DNA of 64,000 nt from contig NC_068994.1 of the NCBI RefSeq assembly GCF_001194135.2, positions 47,989,234 to 48,053,233 on the forward strand. The letters are read 5' to 3'. A model generated the notes under the pieces. That model had not been told where the DNA came from and made no database searches. It saw only the letters and a list, made by a program, of their open reading frames with translations. The stretch's first letter is position 1; the number at the start of each line of letters is the position of its first letter. Of the stretch, positions 52,564-55,080 are shown one piece after another. The stretch is from Octopus bimaculoides (Eukaryota). Made by a program: the position numbers and the translations under genes.

Positions 52564-54975
52564 GTATCTTTTGTTAAGGATAAACTTGCTTGGCAAGTTT
52601 AAAATTCCATAGGGATTTAGAATGTGAATCATCAACCACATTTGTGACATACCAGTGAATTGCCTTCCTGTTAAAATATCAAGTCTCCTACATACATACT
52701 AAGAGTAAAACTCAGCAGCCGTTCACTCCCTCCCATTACTTTAGCAAGACCACATCATCACCAATGCCCAATTAAAAACCAGTACTTGTTTAAAGGATAC
52801 AAGTTGATTAACTTGAAATTCTCATTTATTCAAATTTTAACATTTTCTATAGGTGGAAGGGTCAAAGCCCCAAACTCGAAATTAAAGGAACACTACAGAT
52901 GGAAATCCAAAGCCTGAAGGGGGGTAACTATTTTTAATAGAGGCGAGCAAAAAGCACATTTCGTTCAGCAAAACTGAATTTATTACAAGAGAGACCTGCT
53001 GGTTTCAGTAAACATTGAAGAAAAACCAAATTACACTTCAAATTTTCTGCAAGTGAAAAGTCATTATTTTAACAGTCACACTAGTAAACAATAGTCTACC
53101 AGTATCAAACAATACATTGTTTAAAAAAAAAGGAAACAATCTTGTGAAACATTTGTTTTAAACTGTAAAAATATTCTACACGTACCCAAAATGAAATCTG
53201 AATCTATTTAAATCAAGTTGTCAAGCTAATTAATTAATGTCACAAATAAAAATTATAAAGGGGTGAATTGATATTAAGGGGAGAAAATTTGCTGCATTAA
53301 AGCCCAAGTAGGTGCTGTACTTTGTCAAAGAGAGACACTACAAAATATCCTCCCAAAACAATTACAAACTTTAGCTCAATTGGATAATTTCTTAATCTTA
53401 ATCCTCCATCTTCCCTGAAGTTTAATTTAAGGGAAGTTGCTACAATCTCTTACACATTTACTAAGAAAGGATTTTTACCAGTTTTTACATTAGCCCAGAT
53501 TTTAAACACAATCACTACATAATATACCATTTTTGTCTTATTATTTATTACCAGTAGCAACTCCCCTTAACAGGGGCAATTTAAGTGATTTTTTTTTGTA
53601 AGATGGGATAGAAAGCAAAACCCCCACCTGAACAGAAAAACTTGTCAGATGATCCAGCCACAGCTGTAAATAATGAAGTAATTGCATGTCTGGATATTAT
53701 ATCTTCAAACTCTTGACTTGCTTGAAACTTGCTATTTTCTGAATCTTGTCTTGTATTGGGACAGTAAACCAACAGCACTAGACTTCCCGACATCTTCGAT
53801 GCCTCTGGCATGAACCTCCAACCATTACAACTTTGTAGTTTTTCGGTATCTGTAGTACTTGCATACCATGCATCGCTAGCTCTTTGCTCAAAGCTTGAGG
53901 GGAACATTTGCCCATTTTGTTTGTCTGTCCATTGCTCTTGCTAAGGTTAACCTTGACCACTTAGGAGGCGAGCCTTGTTAGTATTTATCTTTACTTGAGC
54001 TCTAATAAAAAGAAACGAAAGACTGGCATAAAAATTTGATCATACCAAAACATTTTTATTACAAACATTACAAAAGGTAAAAGGATTGATTCTAAATACA
54101 GAGGGATGGGAAATACAATTATAATTTAATAAGTTCAAGGACTTAATATTCCAGTTAATAGAATTTGTTTATAAAGGAATTTTTAGATAGAATTGGGGAA
54201 GCTAATGATGCAAGTAGTGAGTACTTGTACAGATTAAATACTTTATTTCTTTTACTAGATTAAATCAGGAGCTTTGGTGTTGCATATCAAATATCAAGAT
54301 TGAAAATTCAGAAAATACATTTAACAAGCTTTTTAGAATATTATTCAAGAGCTAAAACCTTTCCCAAATTTCAAGAGTTGTATTTCAGTTTGGAAGTGAA
54401 ACCATTAAACCAGACATGCATTAATTTGACAATACAATTTAGAAATCCAGTTTATTAGCACTATATTTTTCTTTCTTTAAGTCTCAGACATTTTTTAATA
54501 CATTAAGATGTACACACAAATTAGGGGGGGGGGAGTGCTGGTGGGGTGATAGCAAGAAAAATCATTTCATAATAATCGGTTCTGCAAGTTTTCCAAGAAG
54601 AAAATCAGGAAATAGTCAAAAAAGACTACATCCCCAACAACTCATATTGTACAGTGCATTCAATGAAGTTTAGCATTGTAGTTTAATATACTCCAACTGA
54701 AGTGTCTAATAAGACTCATCTGGACAGTGTGAAACAAAAACCCTCAGCAGCCTAAAGAGGTTTGAGAAATAAAAATTTGACAACACAGAATTTTCCAAGG
54801 CCATTTAAGTGATAGAGAAAAATAAAAAAATATTTGACCCATCCATCATAAATTCAATGGAAAGATTAAATATTTCTCAAAAGAAAACTACAAAGAAAGA
54901 AAAAAATAGCATCAAATAGCTGTGATGTTTAAACTGGATCAAAAATATTGCTGTCAGTGCTACTGAAAAGGATAT
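52564..54975 (-). other. SRSF10: U12-type (minor spliceosome) AT-AC intron, 2412 nt
   Basis: 5' end ATATCCTTTT; branch site TATCCTTAAC about 10 nt before terminal AC; splicing restores CA|A TTT (Gln-Phe) in the RRM. Confidence 0.95.
53520..54001 (-). other. Candidate poison/alternative terminal exon inside the U12 intron
   Basis: U2 acceptor tctttcgtttctttttattag| at 54002; in-frame TAA at 53949-53947; AATAAA at 53549-53544. The 3' end is approximate. Confidence 0.6.
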
Positions 54976-55080
54976 TGAATGTAGGCAAAACCTCTTGATC
55001 TTCTTGTGTAATAATCCACTGGAACATACACATCAGTTACAGGTCCATATTTGCCAAATAAACTTCGCAAGTCTTCGGGT
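54976..55080 (-). CDS. SRSF10: SRSF10/12-like exon 2, RRM ([34 protein letters not shown])
   Basis: Matches human SRSF10 [35 protein letters not shown]; U2 acceptor ttaatag|; ends at U12 donor CA|ATATCCTTTT; 105 nt. Confidence 0.96.

Follow-up and report, generated by a model that had tools for sequence, protein, structure and literature searches.

In the mouse, competition between two spliceosomes sets the level of SRSF10, and feedback then holds that level (PMC7244321). Exon 3 of the mouse gene has a minor 5' splice site, upstream of which Meinke et al. kept 356 nt (PMC7244321). A preliminary description of the DNA analysed here cited this mammalian layout, with competing major and minor sites around exon 2, and was partly off: the mouse major site is located downstream of the minor site and the stop falls within the exon-2 extension (PMC7244321). 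The locus that we describe from Octopus resembles the vertebrate module in its orthologous gene, with an AT-AC U12 intron at the same codon; in a highly conserved, putatively non-coding exon nested in that intron, which has a U2 acceptor, would introduce a premature stop if included and carries motifs of the SRSF10 type close to where it begins; and in a U12-like donor lying some 300-360 nt inside the exon, with a candidate poly(A) signal nearby. It differs in that cephalopods have no credible or conserved major GT beside the minor donor, that the octopus stop is in exon 3 and not in an exon-2 extension, that the octopus exon is rich in TCAAG and AAAGA rather than plainly GA-rich, and that islands of the upstream intron are complementary to the exon, an arrangement of which we found no description in vertebrates.

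Three other described systems are close to this one. The ultraconserved poison exons of SR genes (Lareau et al. 2007, cited in PMC7244321; PMC4379411) share with the octopus candidate a non-coding alternative exon, a premature stop and conservation above that of the neighbouring coding sequence, whereas the octopus exon sits inside a U12 intron; the survey across kingdoms that Lareau and Brenner published in 2015 makes no mention of SRSF10 (PMC4379411). In the USSE of SNRNP48 and RNPC3, as in octopus, a U12-type 5' splice site lies downstream of a U2 acceptor, and the stretch between them is conserved; the isoforms are unproductive, as they would be in octopus (PMC8329584). However, the USSE repeats the U12 5' splice site consensus in tandem and is not used for splicing (PMC8329584), and octopus has no tandem, only a single imperfect ATATCCAG (53697) and, about 900 nt away, a separate perfect GTATCCTTT (52800). 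Finally, in the interlocked, mutually exclusive U12/U2 exons of MAPK8/9 and TMEM87A/B and in the prospero twintron of Drosophila (PMC8329584), the choice of spliceosome likewise decides the exon and a U2 unit is nested in an AT-AC intron, but these systems yield alternative proteins and the octopus alternative would be non-coding.

The window (the whole 64-kb stretch of Octopus DNA that was analysed) includes a minus-strand gene whose product is 100% identical to proteins of Octopus vulgaris, O. sinensis and O. bimaculoides and whose best Metazoa-wide protein matches are named SRSF10 or SRSF12. The gene is thus the Octopus orthologue of SRSF10, as the preliminary description had it. Exon 1 lies beyond position 64000, outside the window, and the following parts of the gene are relevant here.

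54976..55080, minus strand: SRSF10 exon 2, first half of the RRM, from tblastn and translation (100% match to P0001, Octopus SRSF10).
52564..54975, minus strand: U12-type AT-AC intron of 2412 nt, with donor ATATCCTTTT (54975-54966), branch site TCCTTAAC (52580-52573) and terminal AC (52565-52564).
52788..52800, minus strand: GTATCCTTTAAAC, a second, perfect U12 5' splice site consensus of the GT subtype, 236 nt upstream of the AC acceptor.
52460..52563, minus strand: next constitutive exon, the counterpart of exon 4 in vertebrates, encoding the second half of the RRM (FEDPRDADDALYHLD..GDRK), from tblastn and translation.

When position 54976 is joined to 52563, the translation reads ..GFAYIQ/FEDPRDA.., in exact agreement with the Octopus protein P0001. 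The junction is implied in octopus by the annotated Octopus protein, and spliced Q/FED junctions are present in metatranscriptome contigs from other species. The donor ATATCCTTTT directly follows the codon-exact end of exon 2 and meets the U12 consensus /ATATCCTT; the branch site TCCTTAAC, which occurs once on the minus strand across the 64 kb, lies 9 nt before the AC, is followed by AAAAGATAC and comes without a long pyrimidine tract. U12 signals placed on codon-exact exon boundaries are more than chance would give, and the same donor and branch site recur at this codon in loci from cnidarians, lophotrochozoans, chelicerates and vertebrates. The AT-AC pair previously proposed at 54975 and 52564 was therefore confirmed, with all its strings in place on the minus strand. 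The 13-mer GTATCCTTTAAAC is also found in Argonauta, within an intron that is otherwise unalignable.

As a separate observation, several genome annotations impose GT-AG models on the SRSF10 U12 intron, and the protein is consequently mis-predicted in these annotations. The Octopus proteins in the 90%-identity cluster of P0001 have 214, 226 and 229 amino acids, the 229-aa protein being a forced GT-AG model that spans the U12 intron; no short isoform occurs among the Octopus entries of this cluster.

Within the U12 intron, alignment between species delimits a block with the features listed below.

53556..54072, minus strand: conserved block, comprising 71 nt of upstream intron with a pyrimidine tract and candidate exon 3, from cross-species alignment.
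54002..54021, minus strand: U2-type acceptor of candidate exon 3, CTTTCGTTTCTTTTTATTAG, identical in all four cephalopod sequences.
53698..54001, minus strand: core of candidate exon 3, 304 nt, with stops in all frames, AAAGATAAA at 53992-53984 and five copies of TCAAG.
53690..53697, minus strand: U12-like 5' splice site ATATCCAG, where the exon 3 core ends; conserved in cephalopods and positioned like the minor site of mouse exon 3.

The block is 517 nt long and is identical at 514 of 517 positions in a contig from a second Octopus species, with 2 substitutions, against about 10% in the flanking intron (90-91.5% identity there). In Argonauta, the block is 86% identical, rising to about 98% over its first 190 nt, and the remaining intron is unalignable. 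In a third, more distant cephalopod-like locus, the contig ERZ21867824 (the ENA locus), identity over the first 66 nt reaches 96%, above the value for the coding exons; 83 of 86 positions match there at the start of the block, and 50 of 70 third codon positions match in exons 2 and 4. The coincidence of the acceptor with the start of the block is more than chance would give. By phase, exon 3 runs into a stop at codon 8, 4 or 19. Within the 17-codon "peptide" of exon 3, three of the four substitutions alter the amino acid, and conservation continues beyond the stop; hence the constraint acts on RNA and not on protein. Together, these comparisons show what appears to be a strongly constrained, non-coding alternative exon inside the U12 intron, conserved to about 53556.

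Part of the preliminary account of this exon stands. The tract and AG are present at 54021-54002, the exon starts at 54001 in a conserved block, and the acceptor is identical in four cephalopod sequences. The three candidate donors that had been proposed are all in phase 2, and from each of them the translation reads AQVKINTNKARLLSGQG and then reaches the same TAA at 53949-53947. The exon had been called purine-rich, which holds only moderately (60%). No U12 branch site that would permit AT-AG splicing was seen by eye upstream of 54002.

At nucleotides 10-18 of exon 3, AAAGATAAA differs by one mismatch from the published SRSF10 site AAAGACAAA (PMC8522700), as does ACAGACAAA at nucleotides 74-82. 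The exon 3 block is the densest TCAAG window of the whole 64 kb, and TCAAG is enriched relative to composition-matched shuffles in the exon 3-like blocks of the taxa tested, though not in two vertebrate SRSF10 loci; TCAAG is not a published SRSF10 motif. The donor-like ATATCCAG is an imperfect U12 match because it is without TT at +7/+8. The surrounding ATATCCAGACATGCA does not differ between Octopus, Octopus sp., Argonauta and the ENA locus.

A new feature of the locus is that islands of the upstream intron, conserved among cephalopods, are complementary to exon 3 and are predicted to pair with it.

54303..54317, minus strand: upstream-intron arm of helix A, TATTTTCTGAATTTT, pairing with AAGATTCAGAAAATA at 53747-53733 in exon 3.
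54200..54212, minus strand: upstream-intron arm of helix B, TGCATCATTAGCT, pairing with AGCTAGCGATGCA at 53881-53869 in exon 3.
54410..54420, minus strand: TGCATGTCTGG, complementary to CCAGACATGCA at 53693-53683; this pairing would cover the ATATCCAG site.

An inverted-repeat search found the helix A pair in all three cephalopod lineages, and RNAalifold recovers both helices. Helix A has 15 pairs, 98% of which are paired, as against 36-51% when the partners are slid; helix B has 12 pairs, all of them paired in four sequences, with one change from G-U to A-U. For the two helices together (27 pairs), pairing amounts to 99% in four sequences versus 36-51% slid. There is no covariation signal because the arms do not vary. 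The third pair, TGCATGTCTGG with CCAGACATGCA, is complementary at 11 of 11 positions in Octopus, Octopus sp. and Argonauta; the exact TGCATGTCTGG arm is absent from the ENA locus, where the best alternative partner is about 2 kb off and uncertain. The duplex energy between the upstream intron and exon 3, -105 kcal/mol versus -83±6.5 kcal/mol for mononucleotide shuffles, is only a pointer. A scan of 52300-55300 against Rfam returned a single sub-threshold mir-297 match on a TA repeat.

Considering gene, intron, exon and motifs jointly, it is likely from sequence comparison that the octopus block is the orthologue of the vertebrate SRSF10 exon-3 module. The explanation as a whole, an octopus orthologue of the regulatory module formed by SRSF10 exons 2, 3 and 4, has in our estimate a probability of about 0.6. 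In this module, productive mRNA would need removal of the AT-AC intron 54975-52564, which splits the RRM, by the minor spliceosome. Use of exon 3 would give an unproductive message, every frame stopping within 19 codons. Exon 3 would either end at a nearby poly(A) site or join the next exon through the U12-like donor ATATCCAG; by the latter route, a premature stop would remain some 250 nt ahead of a junction. By analogy with the mouse, SRSF10 would bind the AAAGATAAA- and TCAAG-rich start of the exon and promote its use, with negative feedback and a yield of productive mRNA tied to how active the minor spliceosome is. The 5' partner of the 54002 acceptor may be a weak GT, situated within exon 2 or immediately behind it, or else the donor of exon 1. 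Pairing between the upstream islands and exon 3 would probably set how accessible the exon is.

Equivalent blocks are found in the same intron in a scallop, a brachiopod (Lingula), a scorpion, a coral, fish srsf10, a vertebrate SRSF10 contig and bat SRSF12; the blocks of other phyla were initially delimited by eye, and the Saccoglossus locus has an assembly gap. A pyrimidine tract and AG precede the block in scallop, Lingula, scorpion, fish, the vertebrate contig and bat SRSF12. Lingula has a second U12-like 5' splice site, ATATCCAT, abutting the 3' end of the block 364 nt from the acceptor, the scorpion has ATATCCAT about 40 nt beyond the block in the same intron, and fish srsf10 has GTATCCTC 22 nt beyond the block. 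In the vertebrate SRSF10 contig, the U12-like 5' splice site GTATCCTAC lies 362 nt into exon 3, a downstream GT lies at +67 with a TGA 26 nt before it, and TGTACA is found near position +16 of exon 3. This contig reproduces the layout of Meinke et al. and thereby validates the comparison. We favour common ancestry over convergence for the blocks of the different phyla, as judged from their sequences. The preliminary description had proposed an ancestral or convergent circuit in a mollusc, of which the exon-like block is retained, with ancestry favoured, and the switch at GT sites of exon 2 is not supported. No paper describing the module outside vertebrates was found, and discussion of the mouse mechanism has so far treated it as a feature of vertebrates only.

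That switch depends on the following elements.

55024..55035, minus strand: upstream GT candidate GATGT/GTATGT, within DVYV codons; PWM score -1.8; identical in cephalopods, coding.
54958..54967, minus strand: downstream GT candidate TTCA/GTAGCA, at +12 from the AT donor and overlapping an in-frame TAG; PWM score -6.8.
53544..53549, minus strand: AATAAA, candidate poly(A) signal shortly beyond the conserved block, overlapping the weak GT CTG/GTAATA (G at 53551).

In the scheme as originally drawn, a GT at 55030 or 54964 competes with the AT donor and is spliced to 54001, and the message ends at the AATAAA at 53549. The strings all exist, are in phase 2 and lead to the same stop, and the position of the downstream GT agrees with the vertebrate layout. 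However, on a rough 5' splice site matrix, the sites at -54 and +12 score -1.8 and -6.8, at background level (the 75th percentile of all GTs is -2.0), compared with 3.9-8.5 for the five real GT donors of the gene; the highest GT from the start of exon 2 to exon 3 reaches 0.4. This test is low in power because the fish orthologue is also without a strong GT by the matrix. Octopus sp. retains the GTAGCA of the +12 site and Argonauta has it displaced by a 3-nt insertion, but it is absent from the ENA locus and so not conserved among cephalopods, and the upstream GT lies in constrained codons, so that its conservation is uninformative. The AATAAA is present, as described, but its position is not conserved: it is missing in the Octopus sp. 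contig, where the nearest copy is about 20-40 nt upstream, Argonauta has one about 35 nt upstream of the equivalent position, and the ENA locus has none. We regard this exact scheme as unlikely. Another donor, GAG/GTTTTG of a scallop gene model, was discarded: the ENA cephalopod-like locus has GGC and no GT there, and it is therefore not a conserved donor.

The missing partner may instead be exon 1, in which case exon 3 would replace exon 2 as a mutually exclusive poison exon, giving exons 1, 3 and 4, and no GT in exon 2 would be needed. Exons 2 and 3 are built alike: each combines a U2 acceptor with a U12 donor of the AT type, and each depends on the sole AC acceptor at 52564; a credible GT in or after exon 2 is absent in cephalopods, scallop and scorpion; and ATATCCAG, where the core of exon 3 ends, is conserved. 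Exon 1, as read in Argonauta, is in phase 2, and joining it to exon 3 therefore gives ..EGTR-AQVKINTNKARLLSGQG*, with the same frame and stop. Interlocked U12/U2 exons have a precedent in MAPK8/9 and TMEM87A/B (PMC8329584). On the other hand, ATATCCAG is a weak U12 donor, the mouse exon is joined to the downstream GT of exon 2, and Lingula has a good GT at +16 (CAG/GTAAAA). Such an exchange of exons seems to us unlikely as well.

Protein records and contigs of Octopus weigh against the orthologous regulatory module. A protein search with the peptide of exons 1 and 2, YPFQ and exon 3 as the query found no protein with the exon 3 peptide in the database, returning only intron read-through ORFs and short models of other taxa. 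The 108-aa ORF within exon 3 has no exact match on record; its homologue P0165 leads only to unspliced Logan contigs of a related Octopus (runs SRR11869391 and SRR11869385), which, being unspliced, give no junction information, and the ORF was rejected as a real protein owing to frame-breaking indels in Argonauta. In one animal metatranscriptome contig, exons 1 and 2 are spliced and the U12 intron is retained through a TCAAG-rich block, which is then joined to a later exon; this contig counts in favour of the module. Read-through of the unspliced donor in this contig and in many database ORFs would suit a block that acts as an intronic decoy or platform, binding SRSF10, U2AF/U2 and U11, pairing with the upstream intron and stalling or promoting removal of the U12 intron, with regulation by intron retention and exon 3 never stably spliced in. 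That the upstream islands are complementary to the block over a long range, and conserved in this, would agree with such a role, as would the in-frame TAG four codons past the AT donor in Octopus, also found in Argonauta, and U11 binding to unused U12-type donors is a known regulatory device, as in the USSE of SNRNP48 and RNPC3. Yet a strong tract and AG exactly at the start of the most conserved stretch, together with stops in all frames, agree with an exon in use, splicing includes the counterpart in vertebrates, and the ENA locus (P0142) has no early stop past the U12 donor. A pure decoy is improbable in our judgement. That the block has nothing to do with splicing and is a transcriptional enhancer, a separate gene for a non-coding RNA or a gene on the opposite strand is highly improbable: conservation is by itself silent on the strand or function that is constrained, but no Rfam family matches the block, its sole long ORF (108 aa) is broken in Argonauta and plus-strand ORFs reach at most 44 aa, its strand-specific signals (tract and AG, TCAAG cluster, ATATCC) are in the register of the host gene, and the arrangement is met again, at low sequence identity, when this intron is compared between phyla in orthologues and in the paralogue SRSF12.

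Returning to the orthologous regulatory module, the comparison between phyla may be carried one step further. We tentatively propose, at somewhat less than even odds, that the exon-3 module of SRSF10 and SRSF12, a non-coding exon with a U2 acceptor and abundant enhancers inside the AT-AC intron that divides the RRM, is older than the split between cnidarians and bilaterians and usually has its own U12-like donor, and that in cephalopods it is gated by conserved long-range RNA structure, without a competing major donor in exon 2. If this is true, the module would be among the oldest unproductive-splicing circuits in animals, and the link between SR dosage and the minor spliceosome would be ancestral. 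If the exon works in octopus and is shared by animals from corals to vertebrates, the coupling between SR dosage and the minor spliceosome would be a trait ancestral to animals and one reason for the retention of the U12 intron of SRSF10, and the locus would offer a very old poison exon in which to study rewiring, through the turnover of donors, the use of GA-rich versus TCAAG-rich enhancers and the addition of RNA structure.

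The SRSF10 orthologue lies on the minus strand, and from its terminal sequences the intron between its two RRM exons is of the U12 AT-AC type; productive mRNA requires its removal by U12 splicing.

55080-54976, minus strand: SRSF10 exon 2, encoding a 36-residue portion of the RRM
54975-52564, minus strand: U12-type AT-AC intron, starting ATATCCTTTT (54975) and ending TCCTTAAC-AAAAGATAC, with AC at 52565-52564
52788-52800, minus strand: perfect U12 GT-subtype 5' splice-site consensus GTATCCTTTAAAC, 236 nt upstream of the AC acceptor
52563-52460, minus strand: exon 4 equivalent, encoding FEDPRDADDALYHLDASNFYGKNLQIEFARGDRK

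Five more exons follow, ending at TAG 49855-49853 (minus strand), and the product assembled from the window is 100% identical to a database protein (P0001) that has the name SRSF10-like for both O. vulgaris and O. sinensis, with a record also for O. bimaculoides; exon 1 (MSRYSRPPNTSLYVRNVPEGTR) lies outside the window. TCCTTAAC occurs only once on the minus strand across the 64 kb. ORFs that read through the donor as GFAY[IV]QYP.. range from sponge to mammals, indicating that the ATATCC donor is widespread, and the productive junction Q|FED is present in most spliced metatranscriptome contigs. Annotated proteins with spurious inserts or deletions at IQ|FED (for example ..RRSR-ASLSLTKDT-FED..) come from O. 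vulgaris (P0167, CAI9732862.1), Capitella (P0094/P0124), Nymphon (P0122), Helobdella (P0127) and Lottia (P0130), and such gene models are cases of GT-AG boundaries forced around a U12 intron. The intron ends in AC in the vertebrate SRSF10 contig L051 and in all invertebrate loci, while in stickleback srsf10 (L009 8357) and bat SRSF12 (L003 15296) the frame demands an intron ending in ..CAT, that is, AT-AT. The GTATCCTTTAAAC 13-mer, perhaps the sign of another alternative exon or of a site bound by U11, recurs in Argonauta (L001 12763) within intron that does not align elsewhere and, carrying one additional T, in an Octopus sp. contig; it was not found in the ENA locus described below. The surrounding DNA also contains a ~120-nt tandem duplication in the intron after exon 4 (52290-52450, minus strand), with two copies of the unit ..gtttcattgttttct..tatatttac..agcccaggtcagtcctgatcca.tggacct.tggtcaa, and (TA)n-type microsatellites immediately upstream of exon 2 (55130-55330), where both Logan contigs start and where a sub-threshold mir-297 match (E=0.43) is meaningless.

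To assess conservation within the intron, we compared it with Argonauta hians (L001), with an unspliced Logan contig from a close Octopus species (L006), and with a 114-kb ENA contig (L002), here termed cephalopod-like, whose SRSF10 exons share 92-94% protein identity with Octopus. Between the two Octopus species a block at 54072-53556 is identical at 514 of 517 positions, compared with 90-91.5% in the flanking intron, 105/105 in exon 2 and 102/104 in exon 4. Against Argonauta the intron is alignable only at this block (86% identity over 524 nt, with ~98% in the first 190 nt of the candidate exon 3) and at a few small upstream islands. Across the pyrimidine tract and the exon's first 66 nt, L002 differs at 3 of 86 positions, and at the third codon positions of exons 2 and 4 it is identical at 50 of 70. 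The conserved stretch begins ~70 nt upstream of the AG and continues well beyond the TAA, the 17 'codons' of the exon 3 reading contain four substitutions of which three alter the amino acid, and a 108-aa ORF in the block is disrupted by Argonauta indels; these features place the constraint on RNA of the minus strand, anchored at the acceptor. Judged from these alignments, the intron holds a constrained, non-coding, acceptor-anchored block. Exon 3 meets a stop within 19 codons in all three frames, and no Rfam family matched the block.

Among known systems, the vertebrate SRSF10 module comes closest. In mouse Srsf10, exon 2 has an upstream minor AT site and a downstream major GT site with a stop in the intervening extension; exon 3 contains a GA-rich enhancer that depends on SRSF10 (nt 17-60), together with a poly(A) site and a minor 5' site that is seldom used, upstream of which the I3 construct kept 356 nt of the exon (Meinke et al., PMC7244321). 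The vertebrate SRSF10 contig from a metagenome (L051) matches this layout, with ATATCCTTTC, TGA and GAG|GTAACA at +67; its exon 3 begins AATGTAAAGCTGTACAG, and GTATCCTAC lies 362 nt in. Octopus exon 3 begins AGCTCAAGTAAAGATAAATAC, its AAAGATAAA at nt 10-18 has one mismatch to the published SRSF10 site AAAGACAAA (PMC8522700), and ATATCCAGACATGCA, identical in all four cephalopod sequences, starts 304 nt into the exon. TCAAG occurs five times, where composition predicts 0.4 copies, making exon 3 the richest 304-nt TCAAG window of the 64 kb on the minus strand. Most of the sequence-level features that define the vertebrate module are found in Octopus, where the competing major donor, the enhancer and the poly(A) site are candidates at most; Octopus differs in having no clear major donor, a TCAAG-type composition and predicted long-range pairing (lineage-specific). 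The block is not a USSE, because it has no tandem repeat.

The pairing, a feature absent from the preliminary description, involves small conserved islands of the upstream intron whose complements within exon 3 follow a nested antiparallel order:

54317-54303 with 53747-53733, minus strand: helix, TATTTTCTGAATTTT with AAGATTCAGAAAATA
54212-54200 with 53881-53869, minus strand: helix, TGCATCATTAGCT with AGCTAGCGATGCA
54420-54410 with 53693-53683, minus strand: pairing, TGCATGTCTGG with CCAGACATGCA, in three octopod sequences (Octopus, Octopus sp., Argonauta)

The first two helices also emerge from RNAalifold, and their 27 pairs are 99% paired in four sequences, against 36-51% when the partners are slid by 1-3 columns; covariation support is nil, because the helix arms are invariant. 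The third pairing would cover the ATATCCAG site. A long-range structure of this kind would place the acceptor and most of exon 3 in a loop, and it may tune exon 3 use. CTTGA, complementary to the exon 3 TCAAG repeats, is abundant in the upstream intron at 54081-54400 (minus strand), the top TCAAG window of the plus strand, which fits long-range pairing. In Lingula (L008 1687-1699 with 1944-1956, including the downstream GT) and in stickleback (L009 7384-7395 with 7722-7733), each a single species, an exon 3 segment is the complement of sequence around the exon 2 U12 donor.

How exon 3 would be entered is less certain. The preliminary description had GT donors in and after exon 2 competing with the AT donor and splicing to 54001, and the elements it listed are all present: the acceptor at 54002, GTs at 55029 and 54963, TAA at 53949-53947 and AATAAA at 53549, with all three donors in phase 2 and reading ..AQVKINTNKARLLSGQG* to a common stop. 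Scored with a rough 5' splice-site matrix that serves only for ranking, its GATGT|GTATGT reaches -1.8 and its TCA|GTAGCA -6.8, compared with 3.9 to 8.5 for the gene's five real GT donors, 0.4 for the best GT from the start of exon 2 to exon 3 and -2.0 for the 75th percentile of all GTs. Conservation of the upstream candidate is uninformative, because it lies within DVYV codons; in Argonauta a 3-nt insertion sits ahead of the downstream candidate, which was not found in L002. Lingula has a good downstream GT (CAG|GTAAAA at +16), and the rough matrix finds none in the fish orthologue, so the test has little power. We regard this specific donor scheme as unlikely. The AATAAA is present in the window, but a 7-nt difference removes it from L006 (nearest copy ~20-40 nt upstream), Argonauta has a copy ~35 nt upstream of where it would be expected, and none was found within 400 nt in L002; a poly(A) site close to the block end is therefore no more than plausible. 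A Logan contig from another run (L007) ends at 1580, ~20 nt past an AATAAA at the block's end, as expected of a poly(A) site provided that the run is RNA-seq.

Use of the block would yield unproductive RNA, either through polyadenylation near 53550 or through ATATCC-to-AC splicing that leaves the stop ~250 nt upstream of the junction; SRSF10 would promote this use via the motifs at the exon start, and productive output would track minor-spliceosome activity. An attractive alternative, because exons 2 and 3 share the same build (U2 acceptor, AT-type donor), is that exon 1 is spliced to exon 3 and the two exons are mutually exclusive, for which MAPK8/9 offer a precedent; exon 1 ends in phase 2, so the same TAA would be reached. 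As a further rival, the block may act as a decoy or in intron retention. Either rival would change the mechanics and keep the biological point. Exon 3 spliced to any exon was not found in the Octopus products and transcripts searched. In a metatranscriptome contig (L019, JGI Ga0314703_10076809, 1-1307) exons 1 and 2 are spliced together and the ATATCC donor is left unspliced; the contig runs through a very TCAAG-rich block of ~500 nt and joins this block directly to the exon following exon 4, which is skipped; it is RNA-level evidence of such an unproductive isoform in some animal, not octopus. The transcriptome of the sponge Oscarella pearsei (P0135 / P0168) contains two ORFs, one of productive type (..VQFEDPRDAEDA..) and one of 67 aa that ends in ..VQYPFQCIGPSQGK*, and sponges may therefore have an unproductive isoform at the same junction. 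Overall, our confidence in a functional exon-3-type unproductive-splicing module in Octopus is 0.6; the original observation is partly confirmed and its interpretation partly supported.

The same AT-AC intron, in the same codon, is found in scallop, Lingula, scorpion, coral, stickleback srsf10, the vertebrate contig and bat SRSF12, and in each of these seven loci it holds a block (initially delimited by eye) of 58-72% purine after a pyrimidine tract and AG. Each block shows an excess of TCAAG over shuffles matched for composition (P<0.002 for most taxa, with fish the weakest at P=0.04), and in most protostome-like loci, including several metagenome contigs, the densest TCAAG cluster lies inside the U12 intron, a peak not seen in the two vertebrate SRSF10 loci. 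A second U12-like donor in or after the block occurs in Lingula (ATATCCAT, abutting the block end 364 nt from its acceptor), scorpion (ATATCCAT, ~40 nt beyond), fish (GTATCCTC, 22 nt beyond), the vertebrate contig and several metagenome contigs. Since identity is confined to short motifs, homology of the blocks across phyla is likely only. Bat SRSF12 (L003 14010-15296) has a downstream CAG|GTGCAC at +44, and its nested block, which contains an exact AAAGACAAA and six TCAAG, starts much as fish srsf10 exon 3 does (AAAATCTAAAGCAG vs AAAATGTTAAAGCA). With the same AT donor and a nested block in SRSF12, the module seems older than the SRSF10/SRSF12 duplication. In the literature searched, discussion of its conservation was confined to vertebrates, and SRSF10 is not mentioned in the cross-kingdom survey of Lareau and Brenner. 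A pan-metazoan age of the module is likely, and it is the implication of greater interest.
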